Shown here one piece after another: positions 1,317-62,194 of a DNA stretch of 64,000 nucleotides. The notes below the pieces were generated by a model. That model made no database searches. It saw only the letters and a program-made list of their open reading frames with translations, and was not told where the DNA came from. The stretch's first letter is position 1; each line of letters starts with the position of its first letter. The DNA is from Adineta vaga (taxonomy: Eukaryota; Animalia; Rotifera), in assembly GCA_021613535.1 (NCBI GenBank), contig CP075492.1:18724001-18788000 (forward strand), written 5' to 3'. The position numbers were made by a program, and so were the translations under genes.

Positions 1317-1384
1317 ATCTTGAGAGTGGATGCGGGTGAGTGTGGGTTAGAAGTAATTCCCCACACCGACACCTACACCCTCAG
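1317..1384. repeat. Telomere-like palindromic junction element J1
   Basis: atcttgagagtgg...tgtgggt-tagaagtaattc-cccacacc...acaccctcag. Confidence 0.85.
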
Positions 1385-1833
1385 CACTTTAAGAACCTTT
1401 TTTTACTGAAACTTACCTTGAAAATAAAGATTTCACTTTTAAGATGAATATTGCTTTAGAATGACGCTGATATTTCGATTGTTTCTTAATCTTTTTTCTT
1501 TTCTATTTCTTATCAATGTCAAGCAACCTTGGCTCACAATGAAAAACTCTATATACGACCATAGTATATAGACGCGTATGATGGTTGTATATCTTAATAA
1601 CTATATACAAGGACAAGCCGTGTATATCTGAAGTCTGTTACTTTCTTTTTTTTCCTCATATAAAGGATAAAGATGAAGATAATCTTTACATTCACAAGAT
1701 AAATATAAGAAAATGAAACAAGTAACGTTCGTCCTTGCGGCTCATTTGACCCTCGGCTGTTTAAGGCGAGGATACTTTTTGTCTGCACAATCTCTCGAAA
1801 TTTTGAAAAGATGATCAAGGACATGATGCGCAC

Positions 1834-1923
1834 GAGAGTAGTGATGGGTGTGGCTACGGGTGTGGGTTTGAAGTAATTCCCCACATCGACACCCACACTC
1901 ACACCCACCCATACCCTCAAGAT
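1834..1923. repeat. Junction element J2 (same spacer as J1)
   Basis: gggtgtgg...tgtgggt-ttgaagtaattc-cccaca...cccataccctcaagat. Confidence 0.9.
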
Positions 1924-2340
1924 TTATCTAATAATAAAATTTTCGAAAGAAATAATACATCAGACAGAATACAAATTACATTCTTGCTCTTATTTTACTT
2001 CGAAATACTTTAGAAATTGTCGAACACAAAAAAGTACCTAAAGTGTCTTTCAGAATTTCTGAAGTACTTTTGGAGTACGTCGTTCTTGCATCCAACAAAA
2101 GAAATGTCTTTGAAATTTTGACAGATTATATTACATACTCAGTGCCAGGTCTATAGGTTTTTCCATAGTTAATAACAAGTAGCAAAACTAAAATGCACTA
2201 TTTTTCAAATTTTTCGATTCCATTTCGGTGTATTTAATATTTCATTGGTGTATCGACTTACAAGAGAATATCATGAGTCACTAAATATATAATTGTTGTA
2301 ATAAACCAACATATTTTTGCCTGTATAAACCGAACGATAA

Positions 2341-4077
2341 ATGCACGTTAATTCACAAATGTCGCAAACGAAATTCGAATTCTCGCCAAATGAAATCTTA
2401 CTTGAATGTTTTCAATATCTCAATATTATTCATATTTTTGAATCATTTGATCAGTTAAACCATCGTTTAAATTCTCTTATTCGAACTATTCCATTTAGTT
2501 TAAATTTTCAAAATATTCCAAACAAATTTCAATGTGATCAATTCTGTATGAAATTATCAACTGATAAAACAATCAAAAATCAACTCTATTCATTACATTT
2601 ATCAAATAAAAATACAAGTTATCCGGCACATTTATTTCTTTTAAAATTTTCACTATCAGAATTTTCACATCTACGTTCAATAACTTTAGATAGATTCACG
2701 GAAAACAATTGGAAATTGATTGCCCCAACTTTATTATTATCTGAATTGACTTCTTTTCAAATAATCGATTGTTTTGAACTATCAGACTACATAATGCCTT
2801 ACTTACCAATATCACAATTACATACATTAATGATTCCATTACTACCATTTCCAGAATCAATTTCAGATAATCAATTTTCATCCATTATTCATCTATCAAT
2901 TTATAATTGTAATTTAGATGATTTATTTATTGTATTGAATAATGCATCGAAACTAAATTACTTAAAAATTGTAAATATTTATTACCTTTACATAAATCAA
3001 AGAACAAATCATGGCAGATGCATTAAGAGTCCTCTGAATAATCTAAAAACATTCTATATTGATGACTATTATGGTGCATTGCCTTGTCTTTTCACATTTT
3101 TAGAACAAACACCAAATTTGAAGAATTTAATAATTACACGTTATAATGATCCTATCATCATAAATGCTTCTAAATGGCAAAACCTCATAACTTCTTCATT
3201 ACCTCATTTAAAAAATTTCAAATTCACATTTCATATCTATAATTTTCCACGAGCCAATATTAATGAACAAAGTTTAAAAGAATTTCAAAATGATTTTTGG
3301 CGCAAAGAACATCATTGGCACATAGAATATGCAATATCAACATCTTCAGCATTGATTTATACTGTACCATATCCATTTGATGAATTTAAACTTTTATCTC
3401 CTGATAAACGATATTATAATGGATTAATTAATCATATAAACATATTTGATAATGTCAAAGATTTAACACTTCATCCTCGTGCATTAACGGAAAAAAGTCA
3501 ATATTATTTTTCTAATATTGATTCGTTATCACTTGGATATCCACATCTGTTACATGATGAAGACGTTGGAATGGATCAATCGCATATGCCATATCTTCAA
3601 ACAATGGTTGATTTGTCAAATATCAAATATTTGCGTCTGTTTAGTACCTTACGATTTGAAACAAACGATGTATTGAAAGAAATCTTGAAACTAGCAACAA
3701 AAATCACTTCGTTAGAAGGTACATTAGCTGATTTAATACGTTGGTTTAACGATGATGAATTATGCAAATATTTCAATCAATCGATTCAGAAATTGAATAT
3801 ATTATATGATTCATTTGAAAATTCAGATCAATTAGAACAATTCTGTAAAATATTCGAGAATCTTTGTCATCTTCAATTTTCTTCAAATGAATCAGATACG
3901 TTATTTTTAATCAAACATCTACCGAAATTAACATACATAGAAATACATCGATGTTCAGAGAATTATGCAGTATCTTGGCTTAAACAGAAAGTGGAAAAAC
4001 TTCATTTAAATATAACTGTTGATTTCTATGATGATGCTTTCCCTCACCGTTTATTTATTTGGATCAATCGAAATTAA
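2341..4077 (+). CDS. F-box-like / leucine-rich repeat protein (578 aa)
   Basis: N-terminal FEFSPNEILLECFQYL F-box-like motif, LRR-like repeats, FW...HW...YTVPY motif; intact ORF. Confidence 0.75.
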   Translation: MHVNSQMSQTKFEFSPNEILLECFQYLNIIHIFESFDQLNHRLNSLIRTIPFSLNFQNIPNKFQCDQFCMKLSTDKTIKNQLYSLHLSNKNTSYPAHLFLLKFSLSEFSHLRSITLDRFTENNWKLIAPTLLLSELTSFQIIDCFELSDYIMPYLPISQLHTLMIPLLPFPESISDNQFSSIIHLSIYNCNLDDLFIVLNNASKLNYLKIVNIYYLYINQRTNHGRCIKSPLNNLKTFYIDDYYGALPCLFTFLEQTPNLKNLIITRYNDPIIINASKWQNLITSSLPHLKNFKFTFHIYNFPRANINEQSLKEFQNDFWRKEHHWHIEYAISTSSALIYTVPYPFDEFKLLSPDKRYYNGLINHINIFDNVKDLTLHPRALTEKSQYYFSNIDSLSLGYPHLLHDEDVGMDQSHMPYLQTMVDLSNIKYLRLFSTLRFETNDVLKEILKLATKITSLEGTLADLIRWFNDDELCKYFNQSIQKLNILYDSFENSDQLEQFCKIFENLCHLQFSSNESDTLFLIKHLPKLTYIEIHRCSENYAVSWLKQKVEKLHLNITVDFYDDAFPHRLFIWINRN

Positions 4078-4137
4078 ATAGAAATTTCGCACAACTTGTC
4101 GAGATTTAGAGAAAATTTTCTGTGTGTCATCATTTTA

Positions 4138-4203
4138 CTTGAGGGTGTAGGTCTCTTGTATTCACAATCTACCACACACCTCACCTACCTACACCCTCAA
4201 GAT
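4138..4203. repeat. Junction element J3
   Basis: perfect 15-bp inverted arms cttgagggtgtaggt / acctacaccctcaag, followed by at. Confidence 0.95.
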
Positions 4204-4424
4204 GGCGCCATCTATGAAATATTTACATAGTTTATGTAGATTTGGGATCATTTTTATTTTGTCTAAAGATCTACGATGTTTTCGGCATCATTTTCTGTTT
4301 GTCTGAATTTTATGAGTCAAGTTTTAAAATAATTAACTGAGATACATAACCAATCTGATAGTTATTCGATACTGTTATAGTTTTCGGTTCGAGATCTCGT
4401 CAGTTTTACTAGTTCTTATCTGGT

Positions 4425-6920
4425 ATGGAGAAAGATAAAAACATTCGCCATATTGATACAAAGGTCGTATCATCATTAAATCTCAAAATATCTGATAATT
4501 TCGATGAATATATTATAATAATCGTTGGTTTAAATCACGACGAAATTTTATATGATGGTCTTACAAACATGGTTAAAGCTGATCGTATAGAATCATTCGA
4601 TGACGTTGAAAAAAGTCTTCCATTTATTCAATCTAAATCAAGTATAGATATTTTCTTGATTATTTCAGGCACATTAGGTAAACAGTATATTAATCGAATT
4701 ATTCGTGAAACACAAATTATTGCTGCTTATATCTATTGTATGGATGAAAATCAACATGAAAAATGGACAAAAGAAATTCAAAAGGTTCGATATACAACAT
4801 CCGATCCAACAAAATTAATTTATCAACTTCATCAAGATATCAAAAATTTTTCCAACCGATGGCCTTTTGAAGAAAAGTCATTTGAAAAAGCTTCGATATT
4901 CTCATCTCAATGGTATCATTTATTTCTATATGTGATTTGTAATCGATCTGAATCAATAACATTATCTTATTACAATATGCTTCAGGAATGTCGTAAATAT
5001 TATGAAAATAATTCATCGATGATTGCAAAGATCGATCGATTCGCACAACAATATAAACCATCGAAAGCAATTCAAGAATATACACGAAATAGCTTTGTTT
5101 ATCGTATTGTTAATCATGCTCTTCGTACACAAAATATGAGACTTATCAGAATATTTAGTCCGTTCATTCGAGATTTACATTATGAAATATCGAAATATCA
5201 ATTGAAATATTATCAGAATATAAAAAACGAAGAATTAATTCGTAGTGTTTATCGAGGACAATATCTAAGTATTGAACAATTGAATCATCTTCGTTCAGTA
5301 TGGAAATCCAATAATCCTATTGTCACATTAACCACATTTGGTTCCACTTCACTTGATCCTGATGTTGCAATCAATTTTGCATCTGAGTCTGATGGTTTGA
5401 TATCTTGCTTATTTGAAATTATCATAAGTGATAATTATAACTATATGGAACATGTCTTTCTTCGTCATGAACAGGTGTTTGCAAATATTTCTTCGTTGTC
5501 AGACATGCCAGAAGAACGAGAAGTTCTCTTTTCTCTTGTTACACATTTTCATATAATAAGTATCGAACATCAGCATAATCATTTGAGCAATTCTTGGGTT
5601 TTAATTACATTGAAACTGGTCGTGGAAGAATATATTCCAAGTTCTTTTAGTGCTTATGATATTATTGAAGAATTGGAAAAATTAAAAGATGTACACATTT
5701 ATCATGATATTTTGGATATGTTAGAAAAAACCATAAATGAGAAGACAAAATTCGATAATACGAACTGGAAAATATGGTGGAATAATCTGAAGGATCAATG
5801 GCATCAAGGTCTTAGATATAAAACACCATTAAATGGGATATTTTACGGCTGTTTTACTAACTCGATATCTTGGTCAAAAGAAGCCATTGAAATGCACAAA
5901 CGTCTCCTACACACAATTCCTGCAATTCAAAATAACCAATCTTCGTTTGATGATTTATATACATTTTCTAACTCCGAGAAGGCAATACCAACAAGATGGA
6001 TAGCTTTATTTGAAGAATTTTTAGAAAATATTTGCAAACCAGATACTAAAAAAGGCCTCATTATTTTCAAAACCGCTGCAGATATGTATTCAAAAATTGG
6101 AGACATAGATAATGCATTAAAATGTTGTAGAACAGTATTAAACTTCGATCCAAATAATCGTGAAATACAAAGAAAACTGAAAAACTTCGAAAAAACTCAA
6201 AAACCTTATCAATCAGGAAATAACGAACACAGAGAAATATCAAATAATGATTGCGAAGAAGTTTCAGAAGTGTATAAAATGCAGAAAGTATTAGAATCAT
6301 TGTATCAAATTTACAAAGAAAAATCTAATGACATTTCTTCTATAGAACCATATATTGGACAAATCGTTCGTTTGGTTAAAAGCATGCAGAAATGGTATGA
6401 TGCAACTGATTGTAAAATTATTCTTCATTTACGGTTCGAGAAAGAAGAAGATCTATCGGTGAATGACTATCGATTTAATTTTCTTTCAGCTGTAAGAAGA
6501 CATATTTCAACAATAACTTATGATGGAAGTGGCAATCGTTTGCTTTCATTATATCGTTATGAAAAATATATGCATGAATGGATATTACTTGGACAATTAA
6601 AATATTATTTACTACCATTTCACAATAAATTTACAAGTATGACTACTATGTTTCTTCCTCAAATCAATCGATTGATGAAAAAACTCGCTGTATTAATTAG
6701 TATATGTACGATTTATATATGCATTGAGTCAGGCAATAATGAAGTTAACGTGAACAATATTCGCTTTATCGATATGAGTAAAATACAAACGAAACAATAT
6801 ATTTTATTCGATGATCTGAGAGCACTATCAAGAAATAATTTTATTCCTAATGAAACATATTACGATATACCAAATGACAAAAGATTCATTGCAAAAGACT
6901 TTTTTGATTTTTTCACTTAA
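4425..6920 (+). CDS. R-S-E type ADP-ribosyltransferase domain protein with TPR-like segment (831 aa)
   Basis: YTRNSFVYRIVNHALR, VYRGQ, TFGSTS, EEREVLF motifs. Confidence 0.8.
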   Translation: MEKDKNIRHIDTKVVSSLNLKISDNFDEYIIIIVGLNHDEILYDGLTNMVKADRIESFDDVEKSLPFIQSKSSIDIFLIISGTLGKQYINRIIRETQIIAAYIYCMDENQHEKWTKEIQKVRYTTSDPTKLIYQLHQDIKNFSNRWPFEEKSFEKASIFSSQWYHLFLYVICNRSESITLSYYNMLQECRKYYENNSSMIAKIDRFAQQYKPSKAIQEYTRNSFVYRIVNHALRTQNMRLIRIFSPFIRDLHYEISKYQLKYYQNIKNEELIRSVYRGQYLSIEQLNHLRSVWKSNNPIVTLTTFGSTSLDPDVAINFASESDGLISCLFEIIISDNYNYMEHVFLRHEQVFANISSLSDMPEEREVLFSLVTHFHIISIEHQHNHLSNSWVLITLKLVVEEYIPSSFSAYDIIEELEKLKDVHIYHDILDMLEKTINEKTKFDNTNWKIWWNNLKDQWHQGLRYKTPLNGIFYGCFTNSISWSKEAIEMHKRLLHTIPAIQNNQSSFDDLYTFSNSEKAIPTRWIALFEEFLENICKPDTKKGLIIFKTAADMYSKIGDIDNALKCCRTVLNFDPNNREIQRKLKNFEKTQKPYQSGNNEHREISNNDCEEVSEVYKMQKVLESLYQIYKEKSNDISSIEPYIGQIVRLVKSMQKWYDATDCKIILHLRFEKEEDLSVNDYRFNFLSAVRRHISTITYDGSGNRLLSLYRYEKYMHEWILLGQLKYYLLPFHNKFTSMTTMFLPQINRLMKKLAVLISICTIYICIESGNNEVNVNNIRFIDMSKIQTKQYILFDDLRALSRNNFIPNETYYDIPNDKRFIAKDFFDFFT

Positions 6921-6985
6921 AAATTCTACAATTTAATATTTGATTTATCCAGAGTGACTCGCTCAATCCTCGACTGAATTAATGA

Positions 6986-7053
6986 ATCTTGAGGGTGGGT
7001 GGAGATGTTCAGTCTTCATCCACATCCACACCCACACCCACCTTTATTCTCAA
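6986..7053. repeat. Junction element J4
   Basis: atcttgagggtgggtgg-agatgttcagtcttcat-ccacatccacacccacacccacc...ctcaa. Confidence 0.9.
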
Positions 7054-7363
7054 AATATTACAAGTAAACTTTTCTCTAACTCAAGTAAGTTTTGCAAAAG
7101 AATTCGTTCTCATCGAAAAATATCAAGAAAAACAGTATCTTCATAGGAAGTTGTACTACTTAAAACATTTAATTTCACATTGATTTTCCCGATAAATATT
7201 TTAAAGTTATCAAATATATATAAATTCAAAAGGCACATTCATATCCTCAAACATTTGAAGAATCTTTTATTGAAAAGTAAAATAATATTATTACAAATTA
7301 CAAATTACAAAATAAGAAGAAATAGATCGATTACGGTCAAATGTCTATCTTTCAGATCTGTTC

Positions 7364-7830
7364 TTAGAATATTTTTTTACATATAAAAGCAATCAATGCT
7401 ACTAATATACAACATCCGCAAATACTTCCAATAATGACACCAATCAGTCCACCGAGTGTCAAAGCTCCCCATCGACGAATACTAGGTCTACAACTTCGAG
7501 TAGAATCAACACATGAATCAGTCCCTAGTATAGAAAAACAAAATTATTGTTTACTATTCTTTATTTTTTCAACTGCACTTACACGCACAACACCATGGAG
7601 CAAAAGCTGTGCCACAACATCGACCTTAATTAATAAATAAAGAATGAAAACTAGTTTTGAAAAATAACACGAATTTTTCGTTTTTACATACCATTTTTTC
7701 CATTATATGCTGTACTACAACTTCCTTGTTGATTGCAACAACTTATACATTGAGGAGTTTGTGCCAATGTTAGACTGAAAATCGCAATTAATACGAATAG
7801 TATACAAAAAACATAGGTTAAAGAGGACAT
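7364..7830 (-). CDS. 3-exon small Cys-rich single-pass membrane protein (not in ORF track)
   Basis: Manual splice: MSSLTYVFCILFVLIAIFSLTLAQTPQCISCCNQQGSCSTAYNGKN/GRCCGTAFAPWCCA/WTDSCVDSTRSCRPSIRRWGALTLGGLIGVIIGSICGCCILVALIAFICKKIF*; two phase-consistent GT-AG introns. Confidence 0.75.
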
Positions 7831-8057
7831 TTTATGAAGAATCTTTCGTAACAACCGTTAGAAAGAAAAACGAAACGAAGTATATTTCAGATTTGATCAA
7901 ATCTTTTATATACGTTTTATTATGAAGAGAACGCAAAAGAAAAAAAGAATGATTTATATGATTTCACTAATATCAGTTATTTTTTATTTCTCTTTTTATC
8001 AGTAAATCCAATATTTACCATTCAACTATTTTAGGAAGTAAATCTTAACTATTCAAA

Positions 8058-8100
8058 ATCTCGAGGATAAGAGAAGACAAAAAATCCACACCCTCAAAAT
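8058..8100. repeat. Junction element J5 (degenerate left arm)
   Basis: atctcgagga...ccacaccctcaaaat. Confidence 0.65.
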
Positions 8101-8619: not shown

Positions 8620-9262
8620 AAAAAACATCTCGAGAGTAGATAAACTTTAAAATCATATATGTGGATATTTACACTAACATAAAAACAAGTACTGTTGATT
8701 TTCATACTCTTCTCATAAATATAGGAGAAAAATTTATTCTTCCACTGCAAACAAATGCTGAAATGAAAAATGAATAATGCAAACCAAAGATAAGATAAAT
8801 AGGTAGGTTTTTTCTCTTGTGCTATAAAAATCGATATAGTAAAAAAGTTAAGAACCTACACTATATCACTGATGAGTTTCCAGATAATTGTGAGTATTCA
8901 CTACTGCACCAGACAACGACAAAAAGAATAAATAAAAAATTGAAGTCGTAAAATAATAAACTATGTCATTAGCACCGCCGATATCTATAACTAATCTTAA
9001 TAATCAATTCAGTCAAATAGCATCTAAATGAGATTGAATATTACAACATTCTTTTCATTCATTATTGTGGTCACAAAATATTGTTTCTAACCAGCAACAG
9101 AAAATTCCACCATTAACTTTCATTACAGAATAAAATGCCGATATTTTCACTATTTACATGACGTAAAGTATTCTTGTATTCTTTCCAATTTTTAATGCAT
9201 TTGACAATGTAAAGAAATTCTTTCTTGAGGACGGGTGTGACTGTATCCCTTCTTCTTTCACA
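8620..9262 (+). repeat. ~600 bp segmental duplication, copy 1 (copy 2 at ~22598-23268)
   Basis: Colinear similarity from aaaaacatct...gagagtagataaactttaaaatc to gacaatgtaaagaaattctttcttg and the spacer tgtatcccttcttctttca. Confidence 0.9.
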
Positions 9263-9282
9263 CCCACCCACGCCCTCAAGAT
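9224..9282. repeat. Junction element J6
   Basis: cttgaggacgggtgtga-ctgtatcccttcttctt-tcacacccacccacgccctcaagat. Confidence 0.9.
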
Positions 9283-9465
9283 AAGTTTAAAACTATCGAG
9301 AATTGAAGAAAGCCTTCGCACAATATAAACTTAAAGCATGTTTTTCGAAATAAAAGTCACTCGCTTCTGTCACTTGCAATATTTATTCTTAAATAGCCTC
9401 ATCGAGAGCAATAATAATATCGTGAACATAAGTTTATATACGATAATATTTTGTTTTTCAGAGGT

Positions 9466-12972: not shown

Positions 12973-13034
12973 ATCTTGAGGGTGTGGGTGTGAGGATATA
13001 CTAGACAAAATCATACACTCACACCCACCCTCTT
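12973..13034. repeat. Junction element J7
   Basis: atcttgagggtgtgggtgtgag-gatatactagacaaaatcataca-ctcacacccaccctctt. Confidence 0.9.
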
Positions 13035-14110
13035 AAAAATCAATTCAGCTCATTCAGCTGAAATACGATAGAGATATTCAACTTTTGGTGTCCGTTTCCC
13101 AAGCTACTGGACATCCAATAAAATTAACTTTGCTTTCGATTCCTTCAAGAATTGTAAAGGAATCGGCTGATGATGCTGGTTGTTTCGGTGAAATGTTGAC
13201 AGTATGGTTGCTTGACTTCCTCTGAGGATGGTGTGTGTATTTTATTAGGATTAACAATAGAGAAAACTCACAGAAATAAAGAGAAAAATTGTTGAAAAAA
13301 TAGTAGAAGGAGAAACTGACTACTCGATAATGTTTGGTTTTCGGTCCGGATGTGTACTTGTCCGATTTTACCTAAGAAGAAAAAATAGTGATTAAACCTT
13401 TCAAGCCCCGGTTGTTTTTGGAAAAATACAAAATTTATGAAAAATGTTCAAATATATTCTTAAAAAAAATTATACTTCGTGTCCAACAAACATTAGTATT
13501 TTATTCTTATATGACATTCTTCGAAGCAATCAGCAATAGATAGAAGTAGATTTCAGTTGGACAGGCATATCTTGTATCGAGTCGAACATTCTGGGTGATA
13601 ATAGAATGAAAAAGCACAAAATGATAATAAGTCTAGTTGAAAAATTCATATAGGAAATAAAATAATACCCGAGGAAGATACCTTTAGTAAAGTCACACAT
13701 TGTAAATATACATGAACATGCAGAGAGCAAAGAAACGGCGACATATACTGTCTTTATGTAGAACAACAACAGAGAATGTACGACAAGTATATCGACTATA
13801 GATTTCGAGCATGATACCGTGGCTCTAGTCCGTAACCTAACAAATAAAACCCTCTTCCAAATAACCAGAGAATATGCTGATGACATATTTGTCCCGTCAC
13901 TAAATTTGGACGTGCTTATAAGTAACCGATATTCTAGATCGAATACCGAGACATACACATACATCGCCGGGACTCAAACAAATAATTAAGTACCATAAAG
14001 TACTGGGAATTATAACCTCAAAGAAGAATCTACGAATGCTAGAATAAAATATCAAAACATTCTTGCGGCAAGTTTTCAAGGAAACACTATATGGACACAA
14101 CATACCTGGC

Positions 14111-14646: not shown

Positions 14647-14690
14647 GAGAGGGTGTGGTTCTTCTCTTTATAATACCCACACCTTCAAAA
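14647..14690. repeat. Junction element J8
   Basis: gagggtgtggt-tcttctctttataat-acccacaccttcaaaa. Confidence 0.8.
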
Positions 14691-19674: not shown

Positions 19675-19705
19675 GGTGTTCTCTTTATCAATACCCAACC
19701 CTCAA
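19675..19705. repeat. Junction element J9 (degenerate, spacer like J8)
   Basis: ggtg-ttctctttatcaat-acccaaccctcaa. Confidence 0.6.
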
Positions 19706-19876
19706 CATATTTGTTAGTTTTCTACATTAATTAGTACGCAGAAAGTAACCATAGTGAAACTTCCTGAGCATAAAAGTCATATTTTATTAACAAACCGTCA
19801 GGTCTGCGAATGTCAAACATAAGAAAAAAAGTTCGACTCGGGGAACATAATTGAAACCGACTTATGAAATCTAAAA

Positions 19877-20182: not shown

Positions 20183-20220
20183 GGGTGTGGGTGTATCTTT
20201 CTCTTATACCACACCCACCC
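20183..20220. repeat. Junction element J10
   Basis: gggtgtgggtg-tatctttctcttata-ccacacccaccc. Confidence 0.85.
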
Positions 20221-22597: not shown

Positions 22598-23268
22598 AAA
22601 AAACATCTCTAGAGTAGATAAACTTTAAAATCATATATGTGGATATTTACACTAACATAAAAACAAATACTGTTGGTTTTTGATACTCTTTTCATAAATA
22701 TAGGAGAAAAATTTATTCTTCTACTGCAGAAAATGCTCAACTTTGTTTTGTATGATGTATATATCAGTATAATGTCAGTGGAAGAATATTTCTGTTAATT
22801 GAAAAGGTAACAACTTCAATACTATGCATGCTGACATCAAAAAATGAGTAATGCAAAGCAAAAATAGGATAAATAGGTAGGTTTTTTTTCTTGTGCTATA
22901 AAAATCGATACAGCAAACGTTAAGAAACTATACTATATTGTTGATGAGTTTTCAGAAAAGTATGAGTATTCACTACTGCACCAGACAACGACAAAACGAA
23001 TGAATAACAAATAGATGTCGTAAAAAATAAACTATGTGATTAGCACCGCTGATATCTATAGCTAAGCTTAATAATCAATTCAGTCGAATTGTTTCTAACT
23101 AGCAACAGAAAATTCCACTATTAACTTTCATTACAGAATAAAATGCCAACATTTTCACTATTTACATGACGTAAAATATTCTTGTATTCTTTCTAATCTT
23201 TAATGCATTTGACAATGTAAAGAAATTCTTTCTTGTGGGTGGGTGTGATTGTATCCCTTCTTCTTTCA
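22598..23268 (+). repeat. Segmental duplication, copy 2 of 8620-9262
   Basis: Colinear similarity ending in the junction element spacer. Confidence 0.9.
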
Positions 23269-23292
23269 TACGCTCACCCACACCAACACCCT
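23232..23292. repeat. Junction element J11 (same spacer as J6)
   Basis: cttgtgggtgggtgtga-ttgtatcccttcttctt-tcatacgctcacccacaccaacaccct. Confidence 0.9.
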
Positions 23293-24742: not shown

Positions 24743-24810
24743 CTTGAGGGTGGGTGTGGGTAACATATTAATATATGTGTCTCGCTCACACCCTCACCCA
24801 CACCAACCCT
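24743..24810. repeat. Junction element J12
   Basis: cttgagggtgggtgtgggt-aacatattaatatatgtgtctcg-ctcacaccctcacccacaccaaccct. Confidence 0.9.
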
Positions 24811-25036: not shown

Positions 25037-25078
25037 TGAGGGTGCATATTGAATCTCATCCACTCTCACCCTCATGAT
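25037..25078. repeat. Junction element J13
   Basis: tgagggtg-catattgaatctcatccactct-caccctcatgat. Confidence 0.75.
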
Positions 25079-26665: not shown

Positions 26666-26722
26666 TGAGGGTCACATTTATACACTAGTCTTACTTTCAT
26701 ATTTTCATTCCTCATCCTCAAG
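26666..26722. repeat. Junction element J14 (degenerate)
   Basis: tgagggt-cacatttatacactagtc...-cctcatcctcaag. Confidence 0.6.
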
Positions 26723-26818
26723 CTGAGCATTGTCAAGTACATCTGAATATTTTCGTTTACTATAACTGTACTTTAATCATGAGCTTTTATACAGCAATGA
26801 AACGTGCAAGAAGATATC

Positions 26819-26877
26819 GGGTGTGGATAATGGTATGGATATGGTTGACTTAAACTACTCGCACCCACACCCTCAAA
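26819..26877. repeat. Junction element J15
   Basis: gggtgtggataatggtatggatatgg-ttgacttaaacta-ctcgcacccacaccctcaaa. Confidence 0.85.
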
Positions 26878-26934
26878 CATTTCTTTCACCATCGACGACA
26901 TAAACTGAATACAATAACATTACAATACATTTAA

Positions 26935-27180
26935 CCCTTTCGGGACCGGCGACGCTTTAAAGCGTCATTGAAATTGTATATGATCTGGCGCAAGTGAATT
27001 CGAATTTTTCCCGAATCTTTTCGAAGTAGGTGAGATAAAGATGCGGATCATAACACAAACATGTAAAATAAAGCAACCGTAACATTTCCTTCGAAGATAC
27101 CCACGACAGATTCGAATTCACTTGCGCCAGATCATACAAAATTTTAATGACGCTTTAAAGCGTCATCGGTCCCGAAAGGG
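26935..27180. mobile_element. piggyBac-type MITE with ~70 bp TIRs
   Basis: ttaa|ccctttcgggacc...ggtcccgaaaggg|ttaa; long near-perfect inverted repeats. Confidence 0.9.
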
Positions 27181-27204
27181 TTAATAATTTCATTATGATA
27201 TTTA

Positions 27205-29446: not shown

Positions 29447-29485
29447 ATCAGGGTGTGGGTATGCTGTATTCACCCACACCCTCAA
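29447..29485. repeat. Junction element J16
   Basis: agggtgtgggt-atgctgtattc-acccacaccct(caaa); perfect 11-bp arms. Confidence 0.9.
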
Positions 29486-31620: not shown

Positions 31621-31672
31621 TTTGAAGGGTGTGGATGTGAGTATGTTTTATACACAGACACCCACACCCATC
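31621..31672. repeat. Junction element J17
   Basis: tttgaagggtgtggatgtgagt-atgttttatacacag-acacccacacccatc. Confidence 0.85.
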
Positions 31673-34235: not shown

Positions 34236-34322
34236 TGGATGGGTGTAGGGGTGTGGATGTGGGTGAGCGTATAGCTGAAGATACAATAAGAGTCACCCCA
34301 CACACACCCACACTCTCAAGAT
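34236..34322. repeat. Junction element J18
   Basis: gggtgtaggggtgtggatgtgggtga-gcgtatagctgaagatacaataagag-tcaccccacacacacccacactctcaagat. Confidence 0.9.
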
Positions 34323-35783: not shown

Positions 35784-35836
35784 ATCCTGAGGATGTGGGT
35801 GTTAGATAGATGTAATAATACCCACACCCACACCCA
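35784..35836. repeat. Junction element J19
   Basis: atcctgaggatgtgggt-gttagatagatgtaataat-acccacacccacaccca. Confidence 0.9.
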
Positions 35837-37130
35837 TATTGTTGATTAATTTCATTTTCTTCAATAAAATCAATATTTGATTTTAATACAATTTTGCTTT
35901 CTAAAGAAGTTAAATTCATTAAAGTATCAATGGTATATTTCTCATTCTCCCATCTAGTTGAATTATTTCCATCAGAAATCCTTTTTTATAAATAATCCAA
36001 TTCGTTGTTGAACTTCAACCATGGACATAAGATTATGTTTTACCAGATGAATAACTATAATTTCAGTAAATCTACAAATCGTTGTGAAATCATATGATAA
36101 GAAAGAAGATTTAAAACATGAAATAATTCATCAGTAATTTCTTTGATATAACGAAAATATGATGATATATCATCATCTGGCAAATATTAAACCCATGTTA
36201 ACATATGTACGAATTCGACAGTTAAAGTACCAAAATAAGTATAGAATTTAATCAATTTATTATTTTCTACAAAGTTTCTTTACGCAATAAAACTGATTAT
36301 ATAATTTGTTTAATAGATTTTATTTTTCAAAAGAAATTTTGTTTAAAATATGAAAGAATAGATTACAATTTCTTTTGAAATATAATCTGGCGTATAATCA
36401 AAGAAATTATAATTATTATGTTGTTTATAACATAAATCATTGTAAAGATCATAAATAAATTTTTCAATTAACTTTTCAGAATGTATTTCAAGATGTTTAA
36501 CAACATCATCTTTGTATTTATTATTTATACAAATAATTGTTTCTAAATAATTTCTAAGATCATTATAAATGTATGTATTTTCTTCACCTATTTTTGATTT
36601 AATTAATATAGAATTGAAATCATAACATATTGCTTTTGAGAAATAAGAATTTTCTTTATTAGATAATAATATTAGAATATGTTGATTATTTGATCCTTGA
36701 ATAAATAATTGTAAAGCAGCATATTGTGAAATCTTTCGTAAATTTTCTATTTTATTTTGAAGTTGATTATTTGTATATCGAAACTTAATTCAATCAAATA
36801 CATAACTGAAAAAAGAATAGAATTGTACAATTTTATATTACTTGAATAATGATAAAATCTTGTTGAGTTAAAATGAAGATTGTTCAAAAGATTTGCGTTT
36901 TGTTGAACAAATTCAGATAGATAATATGAAAGATCATTATTGTACAATAAGTATCGTAAGACATTAAAAACAATAATATGTTCATTTTGTATATTTTTTG
37001 TAAGTTTTCACTAATTATTATCGTTAAATGTTGAAAAGGTATTGGTAAAATTTGTTCTATTTTTGGCGAGAGAAATATAATTTGATTAATAATCTCTAAT
37101 TGAATATGATGTGTTTAGTATCATTATAAA
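35837..37130 (-). pseudogene. Very AT-rich degraded coding-like segment between J19 and J20
   Basis: Broken minus-strand ORFs rich in N/I/K/F/Y; last frame runs into J19 (ENEINQQ-YGCGCGY). Confidence 0.35.
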
Positions 37131-37172: not shown

Positions 37173-37216
37173 TGTGGGTATGGGTATGTTGTATACACCC
37201 ACATCCATCCTCAAGA
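37173..37216. repeat. Junction element J20 (spacer like J16); further C-rich half arm at 37289-37337
   Basis: tgtgggtatgggt-atgttgtatac-acccacatccatcctcaaga. Confidence 0.85.
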
Positions 37217-39333: not shown

Positions 39334-39424
39334 ATCTAAGGGTGTTGGTGTGGATATGGGTGTGAGTGTCGTCTTTATCTCACATCCACACTCTACACCC
39401 CCAAGATCGCCACACCCTCAAGAT
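39334..39424. repeat. Junction element J21 (doubled right end)
   Basis: atctaagggtgttggtgtgg...gtgag-tgtcgtctttat-ctcacatccacac...cccccaagat-cg-ccacaccctcaagat. Confidence 0.9.
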
Positions 39425-39454: not shown

Positions 39455-39512
39455 TGGGTGTGTGTGAGGATGTGGGTTGTTGTGAGATAGATATAGTGCC
39501 CACACCCAACCT
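39455..39512. repeat. Junction element J22 (related to J19)
   Basis: tgaggatgtgggt...gagatagatatagtg-cccacacccaacct. Confidence 0.8.
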
Positions 39513-46224: not shown

Positions 46225-46479
46225 TAGTGATGGCACTTTAACTTTACTTTAAAAATCAAAGTTACAGTAAAAACTTTAACTTTAATTAAAGTATAGTAAA
46301 AAACCGAAAATATTTTTAGCTCGCCCTGTTTAATTTTATATGGTTTTGGATAATAATTTTCAACTTTAAAATTCCTTTAATTAAAGTTAAAGTTTTTACT
46401 GTAACTTTAAATTTAAAGTAAAAGTAAAAGCTTTAAACTTTAAGCACTTTTTCAAAGTAAAGTTAAAGTGCCACCCCTA
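46225..46479. mobile_element. hAT-type MITE
   Basis: TIRs tagtgatggcactttaactttacttt / aaagtaaagttaaagtgccaccccta; 8-bp TSD attatgaa. Confidence 0.9.
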
Positions 46480-46673: not shown

Positions 46674-46735
46674 GGAGTGTGAATGTGAGTATGGATGTGT
46701 TTATTATACTCGTTCCACATCCATACCCTCAAGAT
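46674..46735. repeat. Junction element J23
   Basis: gtatggatgtg-tttattatactcgttc-cacatccatac-cctcaagat; variant arms are exact mirrors. Confidence 0.9.
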
Positions 46736-46980: not shown

Positions 46981-47122
46981 TAAGGATGTGGTATGGGTAT
47001 GGGTGTAAACGAGAGCAAAACAACTACTCTCACTCATACCCACATCCATACCCACACCCTATACTCACCCTCAGCCTCGTGAAAAACGTTAGTTTTGTGG
47101 TAGTTTTACTCACCCCCTCAAA
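46981..47122. repeat. Junction element J24 plus trailing partial copy
   Basis: ggatgtggtatgggtatgggtgt-aaacgagagcaaaacaactact-ctcactcatacccacatccatacccacaccct...caccctcag; ctcaccccctcaaa at ~47109-47122. Confidence 0.85.
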
Positions 47123-53691: not shown

Positions 53692-54882
53692 TTATAATAC
53701 TTGTGTCTTCGACTCGTTCTTTGCTGCACTTTTCAGAATGGATAATGCTGGTTGAAACACTTCCAAATGCACCTGGGATTCTGGATGATTACATTCTAAT
53801 AGATATGTTCTAACTTTGTCGAGAAATGTGGGTGAACCACACATGTACACATGAGTATCTGGAGTAATTTTGCTTTTAAGAAGATCTTTTGTAACAGGAT
53901 TTTCCTTATCAAGTACAATGTAATGATCTTTGTCGAGAAGAGATTCCATTTCTTCAAGGAAAGCACCAACACCTTTTTTCGAAACCTGATAAATAAGAGT
54001 TACTGAATCTAGTCTGCCTTGATTTTTGAGGTCCTTAATCATCGCAGCAAGTGCGGTAATACCAATACCTCCGGCAATAAATAGATGACTCTTAGCACCA
54101 TTGACTAAAACAAATTCACCAGCTGGTAATGAAGCTAAGATTGTATCATGCTCCCGAAAATGATCAGCTATCTCGTTAGAAACGATACCGAATGGTTGGT
54201 CGTCATCTTTCTCTTGTTTACATGCCACGCTATAGGTTTTTCCATTGAATGGTTCTGTCAGACTGTAATGTCGATTGTGCAATTGTCCATCTTTTTGAAC
54301 ACGAAGAGTTAAATATTGTCCAGCAAGAAAAGGACACATTTTTTCTCCATCACATCGTTCCATTGTTAAAGCAGTAACTGATCCATTGCTGATCACTTCT
54401 TTTTTAACAATTGTCAATGGAATAAAATCTTTTTGTGCATCACTACCGAGATCGGCATACAACTGCTTTTCAACTTTTATAAATACTGAAGCAATAATAC
54501 CGTACGCAGTTGACCACGCTTCTAAAACTTCAGCTGTTGCTTTGTCGCCCAAAACTTCAGTAATAGCACTGAGTAAGAAATGACCGACAGTTTTGTAATG
54601 ATGTGGTTGAACCATGAGAGCGCGATGTTTATGACCGACGATTCGTATCCATGGCATAAGTGCATCTAAATTATCGATATTTTCTGCAGCTAAATATATT
54701 GTATTTGCCAATGCTAATGGTTGAGTACCGATTTTTAAATTTGTTTGATTAAACATATTTAATAAGTGTGGATGAGCTTTGAACATATCTCGATAAAATA
54801 TTGATGTAATCTCTTTTCCATTTTCTCGTAAAAGTGGTGCAGTAGATTTTATTATTTCTTTTTGTTTATCACTCAGAGGCAT
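53692..54882 (-). CDS. Flavohemoglobin (nitric oxide dioxygenase, Hmp/Yhb1 family; 396 aa)
   Basis: Globin (FY..MF..HP, Q..ALA, HKH..L.V...HY..VG) + FAD domain (GQY, RHYSL) + NAD domain (AGGIGIT, YMCG, EVF). Confidence 0.92.
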   Translation of the reverse strand: MPLSDKQKEIIKSTAPLLRENGKEITSIFYRDMFKAHPHLLNMFNQTNLKIGTQPLALANTIYLAAENIDNLDALMPWIRIVGHKHRALMVQPHHYKTVGHFLLSAITEVLGDKATAEVLEAWSTAYGIIASVFIKVEKQLYADLGSDAQKDFIPLTIVKKEVISNGSVTALTMERCDGEKMCPFLAGQYLTLRVQKDGQLHNRHYSLTEPFNGKTYSVACKQEKDDDQPFGIVSNEIADHFREHDTILASLPAGEFVLVNGAKSHLFIAGGIGITALAAMIKDLKNQGRLDSVTLIYQVSKKGVGAFLEEMESLLDKDHYIVLDKENPVTKDLLKSKITPDTHVYMCGSPTFLDKVRTYLLECNHPESQVHLEVFQPALSILKSAAKNESKTQVL

Positions 54883-56398: not shown

Positions 56399-56426
56399 AT
56401 CTTGAGGCTTTTTGGGTCTTCCCACC
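56399..56426. repeat. Collapsed junction element J25
   Basis: atcttgaggctttttgggtcttcccacc. Confidence 0.5.
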
Positions 56427-56480
56427 TTCGTAGAAACAGTTGCTATGTTTCATTGATTATTACTAGTAGTTTAGGCACAA

Positions 56481-56536
56481 ATCTTGAGGGTGTGGGTCAT
56501 GCTATACTCTTAACCCAGACCGAGACCCACACCCTT
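56481..56536. repeat. Junction element J26
   Basis: atcttgagggtgtgggt-catgctatactctta-acccagaccgagacccacaccctt. Confidence 0.9.
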
Positions 56537-56881: not shown

Positions 56882-56947
56882 TGTGGGGTCGGGTGGGTGT
56901 CGATGGGGCTATACTCTTATTTCACACTCACACCCTCACCACGCCCT
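56882..56947. repeat. Junction element J27 (spacer shared with J26)
   Basis: tgtggggtcgggtgggtgtcgatggg-gctatactcttattt-cacactcacaccctcaccacgccct. Confidence 0.85.
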
Positions 56948-56948
56948 A

Positions 56949-59323
56949 TTACACTGTTGAACAACACTTCAAATTGGTTCTCACAAAGTCAGTTAAAAAT
57001 CTCAAATAACAGGGATTTTTCTGTTTCCGTATTTTCCATCGTTTTCTTTTTCCTATGTTGTGTGTCTCTTTTTGCAATATTTTCTTAAATTTTCGAATTT
57101 GATTTCTCACACTAATTCGTTCTGGATCTTTGTTGAATGGTGTTTTCTTGAGTATTTTCATGGCTCGAATCATATAGTACATAGATCGATTGTAGCATCC
57201 CATATTTAAATATATTGTTGCTAATATTCTTAATGATCCAACCATATTTCTATGCGTTGAACCTTGTGTATATTTTCTTAAACGATATGCCTTTAATGAG
57301 TATCTTAATCCTAGTAAATGTCTATTTAAATTACTGCAATTCTGAGCTAGATTATCATATATAGCAGCAAAATCTGGATGAGTGTATGGTAAACACTTCT
57401 TTTTCATTGCTAATGCGTGATGGAAATATTTGATGGCATGTTGATCAGCGCCAACGATAGACAATGCTATGCTAATATCGACTAATACCGAACTTTTTTC
57501 ATTTAACTCTGTTTCCGGTAATGTCTTACAGTACATATTGAATGCACGTATTGAATATTGAATTGATTCAATCGGATCGTTCATATCACCTAGAATTTGT
57601 CCTATTAACGATAAATAGTCAGCAATTTCGGGATGGTATTCAGGCAATGTTCGAGTACATAAATCTAATGCTTTTTGGAACTGATTTATTGCATCACTAT
57701 ATTTGTATTGTAAACGATAAGTATTACCAAGTGCAATAAATACTTGATGCTGCACGATATGATTTGAACTTCCACATTGTTCCTGTATTTTTTATGCTTG
57801 AGTATAAAATTCTATGGCTCGATTATAATCACCTTTTTGTTCTTAACATGTTCCAGTGCAGAGTAAAGCTCGACCTATTTCAACATGTGTATCGCCATAC
57901 ACTTGTTTAAATAAATAGAATGCACGTGTTATATATTCGAGAGCTCGATCATTATTATTTCTATCTGAACAAAAAATACCCATATGAATGAGAACACGAG
58001 CTTCATCGTCCAAACATCTTGATTCTCTTTCAGTTAGGACTTTATAAGCATTTTTATAATGTTTCCACTCATTGATCTTATCACCCTTCAATTCAAATGC
58101 TCTAGCCATATGTACATGAATCAACGCTATGTTTTCATCTTCAGGATTCGACATGAGCTTATTAAAATATGAAAGTGATGATTCATATTTTCCAATACTA
58201 TGTAACAAAATACTATACATCATCTTTGCACTCATATTTTCACTAAATTCCAAATGATCATCGATATATTTATGTACAAGTAATCGACCTTCGTCAGTCG
58301 CGATCATTTTCGAATACCATACACCATTATCATTTTGTTTTGGTACTGTCGCTAACTGAAATGTTACACCTATATCGAAAAGAACTTCATTTTCATCTTG
58401 AAAATTACTTTCTGATGCAATATCAGCAAAAATAACACGATCACCTAATTTCGTTACATCGCATTCGATTTCAAGTAAAACTGATAATTTATCCGATGTT
58501 GATGCTGGTTCTCCTGCATACATTTCAGCTACTTCACGAGTAAAACTCGTCGATAGATAACCATTCATTGATATTAACTGTTGTTTATTTTTCGTTAATT
58601 CATTAAATTCATTTTGAGTTAATCGAAGACCACGATAGACTGTTACTGGTTCATCAAATTCTTTGAAAATCTTATGTCTAATAGCAAGTGATGAATATAA
58701 ATCTTGAATAAAATATCGATATGTATACATTTGTTCGACATCTTCTGTTCGTAATGCCTTATTAATTAGACGATAGACAAATATATTTTTCGTATACCAT
58801 TTAATTGAATCTTTCGGTTCGTAAGTTCGTTCAAATTCATTAATACGTTCTAATTCTTGTCTATTATTTCGATAGTAATGTCGTGATGCATTAAGCATTT
58901 CTTGTTTAGTTTGTTCATCATGTGGTAATCGAATAAGAACATCTTTGAAAACATGAAACCAAAGAAAATCTGCAGATTTATCTGTTAAATTACGTAAATA
59001 ACGTTAATAATGACGATAGAAACTAAAGATTTGAAGTTGATCTTGAATGATTTTCATATATTTTTGTATAGCATTGATCATATCATTTTCATTAGAAAAA
59101 TGTCAGAGATTTTCTCTTTAAATTGATCATATCTGTTAATTCTACGCGAAAAGACAAAAACACCCTCAATCTGTCGAATATTTTCGATACGAGACAAAAT
59201 ATTATTCACATTCTTTCCAGTAGTAACGCATATAATTTTCTCTTTTTTAATTGTTTGTACACGAGTAATGCATTCATCAAGATTCGTATACATTAGTATA
59301 TAATCATTGATTTTTCGAAGCAT
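56949..59323 (-). pseudogene. ADP-ribosyltransferase + TPR protein, fragmented by stops/frameshifts
   Basis: WYTKNIFVYRLINKALR, VYRG, GYLSTS, ENEVLF, then kinesin-light-chain-like TPRs (HPEIA, HPDFA); three ORF pieces. Confidence 0.8.
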
Positions 59324-59356
59324 CTTAATTCATTTTATCGTCTTTTTGTTTAATTT

Positions 59357-59427
59357 TAGGGTGTGGGTGTGGGTGTGAGTGAAGAAGGTGTACCCACACC
59401 CACAGCCACACCCACACCCACACCCTA
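59357..59427. repeat. Junction element J28
   Basis: perfect 21-bp arms tagggtgtgggtgtgggtgtg / cacacccacacccacacccta. Confidence 0.95.
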
Positions 59428-59539
59428 GTTCACAAATGTAACTCTTGGAACTTGATCTCTGTTCAAAACTGAACTCTTGACTGAAACTAAATCATGCTTA
59501 TAAAATTAGCAAAAGAAACAATTGATCTTTCAATGTGTG

Positions 59540-60825: not shown

Positions 60826-61246
60826 TAGCTATTTCGCAATTTTTGAATAGCACACGCGCGCACCACTACTAAAACTTTTCTTTCTAGAATAAAAAATAAA
60901 TAAAACATCGAAGAGAACACCAAGAGAAACATCTGATGCACGTGTGTGACAACATAGTAGCTTATCTTCGAAGAATCGAAAGTGACATCTTCTAGGATTT
61001 ACAGTGGAGTGGTATGGTGCATGCACGTCAATCACAATGTTGAGCATCTGAAATGAACAAATGTATCATATTGAGTGATGTAATCTTTAACAGCGGAATG
61101 TTTCAGTACTCTGTTCAGCTAATCTAAACACGGACTTTGTCATACATTAACAACTTCATTAAGCGATGCATTTTTCGAAAGTATTTTGTAAAAGTTGACT
61201 TTCGTTGCTTTGTTAATCATCGAACTAGGTATTCTGGCAATTCATT

Positions 61247-61411
61247 AAGGTCAGTTCAGAGAGTGGTTAGATCAATCGGGAAGTCATCCTATTCCGTAAT
61301 GTTCAACATTCCGGAATCAGTTCCACACGAGGAATCAATTCCACCGATTCCATCTTCACCCAATTCGCGGAATTCCATGATGGAATTCAGTCGACCATTC
61401 CAACTGACCTG
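61247..61411. mobile_element. Possible degenerate MITE
   Basis: aggtcagtt ... aactgacct inverted ends; internal ggaat/attcc repeats. Confidence 0.4.
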
Positions 61412-61418
61412 ATCATCT

Positions 61419-61446
61419 ATCAGGGTGTGGGTGTGGGTGAGGGTGT
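61419..61446. repeat. Half junction element (G-rich arm only)
   Basis: atcagggtgtgggtgtgggtgagggtgt. Confidence 0.8.
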
Positions 61447-61974
61447 AAGTTAAAGATTAAATTATGAAGGAGATTCAATAAGAGTAATTATTTCATCTGT
61501 TCACGAATACAGAAGATACTTTAGTAGATATTTAATCCACAGTGACATGCTCAAGTAAGTGCGAAAGACTTATTTGAAAAGATCATAAAATCAAAGTAGG
61601 AATCGAACCTACATCTTCCGATAACCGGCCGTGCATGATGTTTGGTAAGATATCTGTATGATGTGACCGTTTCGTATCAGCTGTGAGGATGTTTATTTAT
61701 GTTTATTATGTGTTTCTAAATGCTTTCATATTTGTTTTTAAGTCTTTGTTGAATGCTTTTATCCGGTTAATTTATGTCGCCCTCGTGTGATGTGGGTTGA
61801 AATTGCAGTGCTCTTATTTGTGTGGAAGTGATGGAATGAAGTTATGCTTGTGTATGGAAAGGTACTCATAACAGTTGGTACTTGACGTGGTCCGAGCAGA
61901 GAGTAACAAGCGACAGAAGAAGCTGGGCCAGCCTGAACAGCAATGCAATATCGTTCGACACCCGCATCACGATG

Positions 61975-62110
61975 GTGTGCATCATCATTATCATCATCAC
62001 CATTACAAAAGAGTTATGAACTTCCTGATGGTCAGAGAATTACTATGAAAAATGAATGTTTTCGTTGTCCTGAAACTTTGTTTCAGCCAAGTCTTCTTAG
62101 AATGGAGAGT
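61975..62110 (+). pseudogene. Actin gene fragment ending in J29
   Basis: [41 protein letters not shown] matches the actin segment [39 protein letters not shown]. Confidence 0.85.
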
Positions 62111-62194
62111 GTGGGTGTGAGGGTGTGTTTATAACGGCGACTGGGTTCACTCACCCACACTCACACCAAGTCTTCACACCCAAACCGTCAAGAT
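62106..62194. repeat. Junction element J29
   Basis: gagtgtgggtgtgagggtgtg-tttataacggcgactgggtt-cactcacccacactcacacc...gtcaagat. Confidence 0.9.

Follow-up and report, generated by a model that had tools for sequence, protein, structure and literature searches.

We describe a family of short palindromic elements built of telomeric repeats in a 64,000-nucleotide stretch of chromosome 3 of the bdelloid rotifer Adineta vaga (G000:C3:18724001-18788000; hereafter the window), which lies at 18.72-18.79 Mb of the 20.35-Mb chromosome and 1.6 Mb from its right end. The window carries about 29 such elements, in each of which a G-rich tract of TGTGGG-like units and a C-rich tract of complementary units stand head to head around a short core. 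We believe that these elements probably arose when telomeric repeats were added de novo to both of two DNA ends which were then rejoined, the core being propagated from a template, and that later breakage or recombination took place at the tracts. This reading draws on the anatomy and polarity of the elements, on one element that is present in only one of two nearly identical copies of a locus and there replaces other sequence, on duplication breakpoints that fall at elements, on the occurrence of the outer motif where Athena elements meet telomeric repeats, and on cores that recur as discrete families.

Anatomy, polarity and number of the elements

The unit TGTGGG is the telomeric repeat of A. 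vaga (PMC8494291, PMC7943196), and interstitial (TGTGGG)n is already known from bdelloid subtelomeres (PMC8494291, PMC7943196, PMC2861651). The elements of the window share the plan (AT)CTTGAGGG-(TGTGGG-like)n, a core of 11-30 nt, and (CCCACA-like)n-CCCTCAAG(AT), and their arms consist of TGTGGG-type units whose orientation is that of a tract added to the flanking 3' end. An initial annotation of this DNA had counted about 30 palindromes with the G-rich arm always on the left; all of them carry the structure, though those at 8058, 19675, 26666 and 56399 are weak, degenerate or doubtful, and the polarity is borne out. Matches to ATCTTGAGGG with at most one mismatch number 18 in the window against 2.5 expected, and GTGGG-N8-38-CCCAC occurs 17 times against 0.10 expected, whereas the order CCCAC-N-GTGGG is absent (17:0). 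Across the genome (6 contigs with a sum of 100.8 Mb), GTGTGGGT-N4-34-ACCCACAC is found 936 times per strand versus 4 times in C-first order. Since a palindrome reads alike on both strands, the informative part of these counts is the near absence of C-first pairs, which is what two 3' ends, each extended outward, would be predicted to leave.

The elements are not confined to the window. The 16-mer CCCACACCCTCAAGAT occurs 474 times in the genome and its reversed control not once; the strict pair pattern catches 5 of the 29 window elements and the 16-mer only two arms, and a rough extrapolation gives a genome total of 4,000-7,000 elements, mostly in distal chromosome regions. On chromosome 1, for example, the 16-mer sites occupy 0-2.5 Mb and 10.9-17.8 Mb, with only four between. 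Of 30 sites sampled with the 16-mer, about a third are half sites that lack the G arm, and at locus L024 the same outer motif closes a C tract that measures at least 80 bp. Half sites are present in the window as well, both on the + strand: a G tract without a C arm at 61423-61443 and a C tract without a G arm at 1075-1088. G-first palindromes also occur in the assemblies of A. steineri and Rotaria sordida; the CTTGAGGG end was found in A. steineri and was not seen in three R. sordida examples. No element accompanies the orthologous dynamin 3' flank of A. steineri or four other bdelloid loci, and annotated elements were too few for a cross-species statistic on gene ends. The suspicion that the palindromes might be assembly artefacts could be laid to rest, given that contigs of an independent 2013 run span the elements at 8058 and 9224 and that the assemblies of other species carry the same structures.

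The outer boundary of the elements is marked by a conserved motif. At 16 outer GAGGG starts, which were not selected for this motif, T stands at -1 in 69% and at -2 in 94%, followed outward by C (38%), T (56%) and A (44%), and conservation of this leader decays outward; at the opposite end, CAAGAT is followed by G at 20 of the 30 sites sampled. Ends as defined as these would also be found if each element were a tiny non-autonomous mobile hairpin, made of DNA or of complementary DNA from a small RNA, that ends in ATCTTGA...TCAAGAT and enters the genome as a complete unit, in most cases captured at a break; its arms would then be terminal inverted repeats and the core families would be subfamilies. 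We consider this unlikely, although the 474 copies of the 16-mer agree with it, as do the variant repeats TATGG and GGATG, which are common to both arms of an element and correlate between them (r = 0.40, p = 0.03). Shared age with C-to-T decay also explains this correlation. Arm lengths within an element, by contrast, are uncorrelated (r = -0.12), and the complementarity of two arms from one element (0.696) does not clearly exceed that of arms from different elements (0.670, p = 0.056), in a comparison of low power because all arms are built of the same repeats. The frequent half sites and the long tract of L024, closed by the same motif, also argue against a hairpin that moves as a whole. 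Taken on their sequences, the arms appear to behave as independent tracts, with a whole-unit origin as the alternative.

Copies with and without elements

The most direct evidence comes from a second copy of window positions 4143 to about 26818, which is 99% identical over 22.7 kb and lies 1.55 Mb away (C3:17171626-17194300; loci L009-L011). This second copy may stem from a segmental duplication of very recent date, or it may represent a haplotype that was left uncollapsed in the haploid assembly. Elements stand at both ends of the block, and about 8 more lie within it, along with several genes. On the left the block breaks off within the G arm of element 4138 (4138-4203), where the copies share the inner G arm, the core, the C arm and the right flank and are unrelated further left. 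Its right breakpoint is the exact outer edge of element 26819 (26819-26878); here the window reads AAGATATC|GGGTGTGG, and the other copy continues into unrelated DNA and lacks the element. Within the block, element 24743 (24743-24810) is missing from the other copy: 94 bp, made up of the element and about 35 bp, stand in place of an unrelated 62 bp between flanks that are 99% identical, and the junction reads AATACTCT|TGAGGG. No target-site duplication accompanies this one filled/empty site, contrary to what the initial annotation had considered as a sign of an ordinary miniature inverted-repeat transposable element (MITE). A further junction is provided by an 89% identical paralogue of gene 2341-4077 (L012), in which homology stops precisely at the outer border of element 4138 (TTTTACTT|GAGGG) and which diverges past TTTTACTT, where the window has GAGGGTGTAGG.

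Differences in the presence of an element, with changes of the end-joining type, are thus found at 24743 and 26819 (relative to the 99% copy) and at 4138 (relative to L012). At two of the three junctions, 24743 (TCT) and 4138/L012 (CTT), the final 3 nt of the flank are in register with ATCTTGAGGG. The one clean filled/empty pair is also compatible with capture of a fragment by end joining; what speaks against a whole-hairpin insertion is that the site shows no target-site duplication, that 62 bp are replaced, and that the flank itself supplies the first bases of the supposed end at two junctions. Moreover, no transposase domain was found in the scanned open reading frames (ORFs) of the window.

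Other breakpoints fall at elements, too. A duplicate within the window (8620-9274 and 22598-23284) ends within the C arm of elements 9224 (9224-9282) and 23232 (23232-23291), which are paralogous, as are some 650 bp of their left flanks. The left arm of element 62106 (62106-62194) starts where an actin fragment on the + strand breaks off (61943-62134; Pfam Actin positions 251-293 of 410, E = 1e-9), the fragment being cut at about 62110 by the G arm, and the opposite flank is unrelated. In addition, the minus-strand ORF 31651-32127 runs into element 31621 (31621-31672), and the TPR protein ORF 56952-57755 stops 7 bp from element 56882 (56882-56945). The initial annotation had suggested, as one possibility, that gene-sized DNA pieces capped with telomeric repeats were fused head to head. 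Fusion of capped ends is largely borne out by elements at block edges, by the end of the actin fragment and by a leader that behaves as the start of a tract; the joined pieces are not specifically gene-sized, as one block measures 22.7 kb with about 8 elements and several genes, divergent gene pairs are not separated by an element, and 24743 represents a break rejoined at the same locus.

Its other suggestion, an integron-like system in which the palindromes are the sites where a recombinase excises and inserts single-gene cassettes, we regard as very improbable. Such a system would account for imperfect palindromes with conserved ends and a variable centre past many ORFs, and for the duplication of element-bounded blocks. 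Genes occur in both orientations with their own upstream regions, however, and the breakpoints vary, lying within the G arm, at outer edges or within the C arm. The gain at 24743 costs 62 bp, half sites occur, and the arms are telomeric repeats of variable length. A search for a linked recombinase or Athena reverse transcriptase was negative in the scanned ORFs: Pfam detected no recombinase or transposase domain in 26 ORFs and ORF fragments, some small ORFs lying outside the scan.

The elements also change faster than their surroundings. Of the 201 differences between the two copies of the 99% block, 28 fall in 477 bp of element sequence, including a 12-bp repeat-unit insertion in the copy of element 6986 (6986-7055) and a 6-bp CCACAC deletion in the copy of element 20183 (20183-20220). 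At the doubtful degenerate element 26666 (26666-26745), the other copy lacks 47 bp (window 26700-26750), a deletion between two ATATTTTC direct repeats that is typical of microhomology-mediated events.

Core families

Among 44 elements compared, the cores fall into a few discrete families that recur genome-wide, each seen in either orientation. The spacer had been described as variable; it does vary, though among recurring families and not freely. Family A (GGG / TTAAGAGTATAGCCTGA / CCCACACC) is represented by 47 exact 13-mers in the genome, all of them within element context, and both of its junctions are conserved in about 38 of these copies. For family D (GGGTG / TTAGATAGATGTAATACTAA / CACCCA) the junctions are conserved in 32 of 33 copies and for family B (GGGTG / AAGAGAAGAGTAT(T/C)A / CCCACACCC) in 21 of 27. 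In the window, element 56481 (56481-56536) has a family A core (GCTATACTCTTAA) and element 35784 (35784-35838) a family D core (TTAGATAGATGTAATA), whereas the cores of 39455 (39455-39510) and 20183 only resemble those of families D and B, respectively. Discrete families with conserved junctions to both arms suggest that the core is copied from a template, and that the core and the inner arm on each side are copied as a unit. The neighbouring elements 1317 (1317-1385) and 1834 (1834-1923), the latter with an intact right end CCCTCAAGAT, share a private core (TTAGAAGTAATTCC) and rare arm variants, which points to local copying. Both the genome-wide conservation of core junctions and the mutual copies at 1317 and 1834 would also be expected of a mobile hairpin. 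The two neighbours belong to a local repeat structure of about 700 bp in window 1-1923 (1005-1075 resembles 1720-1790, and 1-91 resembles 483-571) that also bears the C-only half site at 1075.

We also considered whether the cores are run-off copies of a 3' fragment of hammerhead-cleaved Athena RNA. This was rejected for the families compared, because the loops of the 44 elements score no better against the 12-16 nt tails of 18 hammerhead ends than shuffled sequences do (6.66 versus 6.59).

The outer motif at Athena ends

At their 3' side, Terminon/Athena elements are described to carry a hammerhead with (ACACCC)n or (TCACCC)n behind it, repeats that pair with G-rich chromosome ends (PMC6431247), and on this account TCAAGAT sits on the chromosome side of the junction. 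A hammerhead followed by a C run is found at about 20 genome sites and at none in the control. A C run with CCCTCAAGAT follows the hammerhead-bearing ends at L054, at C6:3846765 and perhaps at C5:1386927; at L054, CACCCACACCCACACCCTCAAGAT and then unique DNA come after the ribozyme and its 15-nt tail. A short C run and CCCTCAAGAT, followed by unique DNA past Athena ends, together with the long tract at L024, suggest that the leader marks the start of a telomeric tract on a former DNA end. The motif at the chromosome side of Athena-telomere junctions is a further point against a self-contained hairpin. That the motif is instead the 3' end of the Athena RNA itself we judged less likely than a tract leader, because it lies on the chromosome side and near only 2-3 of the roughly 20 hammerhead ends.

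In the window, no hammerhead stands directly upstream of C-rich repeats as at Athena/Terminon 3' ends; an Rfam scan returned no family there, and the Rfam and Pfam scans, the latter of the scanned ORFs, revealed neither a hammerhead nor a reverse transcriptase. A genome-wide Rfam search for hammerheads gave two near-threshold hits. At L054 (G000:C3:19514622-19517669, around 1500-1760) and at L053, two tandem hammerhead copies lie about 190 bp apart, in a Penelope-like arrangement that resembles a pseudo long terminal repeat (pLTR); the second hammerhead of L054 has a mutated CUGAUGA box, yet it is this copy that is joined to the telomeric tract. The final 10 kb of chromosome 1 (L021; G000:C1:18136848-18146847) form a tandem array of units of about 535 bp, each with a GGGTGAGGGTGTGGG stretch, and no pure telomeric tract stands at the end of this array.

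A proposed model of two-sided telomere addition and rejoining

From these comparisons we infer the following scheme, which covers the enzyme and its RNA template as well as the order of steps and the way in which the ends are joined. At a break, or at other joinable DNA ends, each 3' end would be extended with a short telomere-type G strand by an RNA-templated polymerase, which may be telomerase or an Athena-like reverse transcriptase. On an end that offers no pairing, the tract would open with the fixed non-telomeric leader (CC)ATCTTGA-GGG, and on an end with 2-3 matching nucleotides it would open part-way into this leader. As the two extended ends face each other, the joined top strand would always read G tract, core, C tract. 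The core could be templated by an existing palindrome, in the form of DNA or of a transcript, or by RNA sequence beside the template, in which version it would be a run-off copy joined to a tract that ends at a normal repeat boundary. Were one G tail copied across the core, it would end in a C-rich 3' sequence that could pair with the G tail opposite, and this would explain how two like ends can be joined. The tracts would be fragile and recombinogenic, such that later duplications would begin and end inside them, and the elements that have survived are found mostly a short way behind the 3' ends of genes and at a distance from promoters. As a conjecture, the template would have the form 5'-...CCCACACCC-UCAAGAU(GG)-3', in the telomerase RNA or in another RNA, and a candidate template RNA would end in ...CCCUCAAGAU or ...CCCACACCCUCAAGAU.

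Several points weigh against this proposal. Every step is deduced from comparing copies, and no de novo event has been seen. The vertebrate-type telomerase RNA model RF00024 has no match in the genome. One of the three junctions, that at 26819, has neither the leader nor a register match. The conserved core junctions appear to fit insertion or copying of a whole unit equally well as two independent additions, the correlation of TATGG and GGATG variants between arms could mean that the arms are not fully independent or that they were synthesized in one event, and the cores have no match to the 12-16 nt segments adjacent to the C run in the 18 hammerhead-bearing Athena ends. Finally, an excess of elements past stop codons, described below, is not predicted by random breakage and needs selection, fragile 3' ends or a function. 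We nevertheless hold that telomere addition at two facing ends, followed by rejoining, is the probable origin of the elements. A bolder claim, that bdelloids routinely cap both sides of a break with a leader-initiated tract and rejoin them across a core that acts as a self-propagating splint, is put forward here as a tentative possibility.

Position relative to genes and transcripts

With ORF-based gene models, an element lies within 200 bp after the stop codon in 11 of the 25 ORFs of at least 150 amino acids, typically at 36-190 bp (3.7 expected under random placement in non-ORF space, P < 0.0002), and within 200 bp before the start codon in none (again 3.7 expected, P = 0.016). Convergent gene pairs share a single element at 6986, 31621 and 34236 (34236-34322), and two divergent pairs have none between them. 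This distribution raises the alternative that the elements are functional signals under selection, such as a two-way terminator, a poly(A) downstream element or a boundary, whose likeness to telomeres is incidental or co-opted. We regard this as quite improbable as an explanation of the elements; co-option as a 3'-end signal may be true in addition.

Such a function would agree with the 3' bias and with the sharing of one element by convergent genes, and the GU-rich arm that faces the gene resembles known poly(A) downstream elements. At three gene ends AATAAA precedes the edge of the element by 17-24 nt, as at the two edges of 34236 (19 and 24 nt), and it is at least 70-100 nt away or absent elsewhere; many gene ends, however, have no poly(A) signal nearby or lie 300-600 bp away. 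RNA-like contigs from two runs cover gene 4425-6920 as far as 6972, 14 nt short of element 6986, beginning at 4423, and the contig of the dynamin gene ends at 9363, 80 nt from the end of element 9224 at 9282, with neither element covered. These runs are assembled contigs whose RNA status is a guess, and the transcript ends are therefore approximate. Selection for such a signal is also difficult to reconcile with the absence of element 24743 from one of two 99% copies, with the A. steineri dynamin flank that has none, with elements that truncate ORFs or gene fragments, and with the fast decay of element sequence noted above. Avoidance of promoters in a gene-dense region could by itself give much of the 3' bias.

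Two related ideas were set aside. The idea that the right arm serves as a promoter or supplies a start codon (CAAGATGG, which is Kozak- or YY1-like) does not agree with genes that mostly end at elements, or with the contig of gene 4425-6920, which starts at 4423. A retrocopy model, in which messenger RNA is reverse transcribed from a G overhang, was rejected because the G arm and not the predicted C arm adjoins the gene 3' end, and because homology between paralogues includes 300 bp upstream of the ATG.

The picture of single-gene units divided by palindromes, as first proposed, is only roughly accurate: some 13-14 of the 28 intervals between elements hold one gene, whereas 8 are empty of genes, 2 contain a divergent pair and another 2 contain many genes.

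Other elements and genes of the window

Of the elements introduced above, 4138 lies 64 bp past the stop of ORF 2341-4077, 9224 lies 184 bp past the stop of a dynamin/Mx-like GTPase gene (Pfam), 20183 lies 36 bp past an ORF end and 23232 lies 70 bp past a DJ-1/PfpI ORF (Pfam). Element 12973 (12973-13040) has an intact left end ATCTTGAGGG, and element 14647 (14647-14690) is found 134 bp past the end of an ORF for an LDLa-domain protein of 1538 amino acids (Pfam). Only the right arm is clear in the weak element 19675 (19675-19708); 25037 (25037-25078) is a short palindrome, and 29447 (29447-29487) lies 67 bp past an ORF end. Element 37173 (37173-37215) is flanked by the 5' sides of two ORFs, and 39334 (39334-39424) has a doubled right end motif. 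TATGG and GGATG variants are abundant in both arms of 46674 (46674-46735), which is followed by the long palindrome 46981 (46981-47075), 209 bp past an adenylate kinase ORF (Pfam). A doubtful half element occupies 56399-56430 (ATCTTGAGGC...), and the best-preserved palindrome of all, with arms of 21 nt that are 100% complementary, lies at 59357-59427. The degenerate palindrome at 8058-8100 adjoins the 5' side of a small spliced gene on the minus strand (7249-8036), which is absent from the ORF listing and was revealed by RNA-like contigs; it has two short introns, 7523-7582 and 7622-7690, with GT..AG borders on the minus strand.

The GC content of the window is 27-39%, and Pfam scans of its long ORFs show mutually unrelated products. 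Three unrelated-looking ORFs carry domains of the NAD:arginine ADP-ribosyltransferase or exoenzyme type (4425-6920, 33288-34163 and 57843-58898), one of them fused to TPR repeats, and many paralogues across the genome suggest that they belong to an expanded subtelomeric family. Pfam also identified the TPR protein ORF at 56952-57755, a seven-transmembrane receptor and a trypsin. The intronless ORF 53692-54882 is flavohaemoglobin-like, with an N-terminal globin and a C-terminal NAD/FAD-binding reductase domain; this architecture is typical of bacteria and fungi, which makes it a candidate horizontally acquired gene. Two AT-rich foldbacks, unrelated to the telomeric palindromes, may be other small inverted-repeat elements: one at 26913-27202 with 114-nt arms that are 82% complementary around a 62-nt gap, and one at 46236-46430 with 79-nt arms that are 77% complementary.

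Discussion

The closest parallels to the elements described here are interstitial telomeric sequences (ITS) at sites of break repair. In vertebrates, telomerase inserts short interstitial telomeric repeats where breaks are repaired, some with read-through into the telomerase RNA (Nergadze et al. 2007, PMC2246262; Sola et al. 2021, PMC8537989), and in the class of TERC-ITS 3 of 41 loci have head-to-head tracts, which were credited to a second enzyme across the break (PMC8537989). Like these insertions, the elements of A. vaga appear suddenly relative to an empty site, with deletions and extra end-joining bases. The vertebrate tracts sometimes include adjacent sequence copied from the template RNA, and the cores may be a counterpart of it, although their derivation from a telomerase RNA is conjecture here. 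Unlike in vertebrates, the head-to-head order is the rule (936 to 4), there are thousands of copies in a 100-Mb genome, and the elements have an ATCTTGA leader, core families copied as units, a distal concentration and a place at the borders of duplicated blocks. Fusion ITS, as at human 2q13 and in cancer genomes, likewise consist of G-strand and then C-strand repeats head to head; such fusions seldom occur, unite entire chromosome ends and contain long arrays, whereas the elements have tracts of 10-40 nt and a spacer, number in the thousands and include at least one in an otherwise collinear locus. De novo telomere addition in ciliates, nematodes and yeast and at human neotelomeres similarly takes place on non-telomeric 3' ends by means of a few template-paired bases, but the healed ends in A. 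vaga would have been rejoined and are internal, and a fixed leader precedes the repeats.

Mobile and recombining systems offer further comparisons. Athena/Terminon elements (PMC6431247, PMC3846280) share the genome regions of the palindromes, have host genes between units and form copies that are re-capped by telomeric repeats, but Terminon chains give co-oriented repeats and not palindromes. The attC sites of integrons, as well as repetitive extragenic palindromic (REP) and MITE palindromes, are likewise imperfect and stand past ORFs and between unrelated genes; the elements differ from them in the lack of an integrase in the scanned ORFs, of co-orientation, of a fixed crossover and of a target-site duplication. 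Athena elements are able to prime at breaks (PMC3846280). In addition, deletion breakpoints of A. vaga lines have been reported to carry telomeric and Athena sequence, and neotelomeres there are transient, 'leaving only scars' (PMC13564844). The advance made here is one of architecture, scale and mechanism and not a new category. We found no published account of the head-to-head rule, the ATCTTGA leader, the core families or the coincidence with duplication borders; priority is uncertain, and a prior description is possible.

Bdelloids survive massive DNA breakage and, to our knowledge, exceed all other animals in their number of foreign genes, which cluster towards the chromosome ends. If the elements are scars of two-sided healing, they would amount to a dated archive, at base resolution, of thousands of past breaks and joins, each with a leader that points to the template RNA. 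Where breaks become fixed, whether the borders of captured and duplicated DNA are seams, and what role telomerase or the Athena reverse transcriptase plays in repair would then become testable questions. Moreover, the G-rich arms past gene ends may have been co-opted for the formation of transcript 3' ends. Finally, if the bolder claim of routine capping and splinted rejoining is true, the leader would lay bare the template in the RNA of the healing enzyme, and these thousands of joints would be the seams at which subtelomeric genes, foreign ones included, were captured, duplicated and shuffled.

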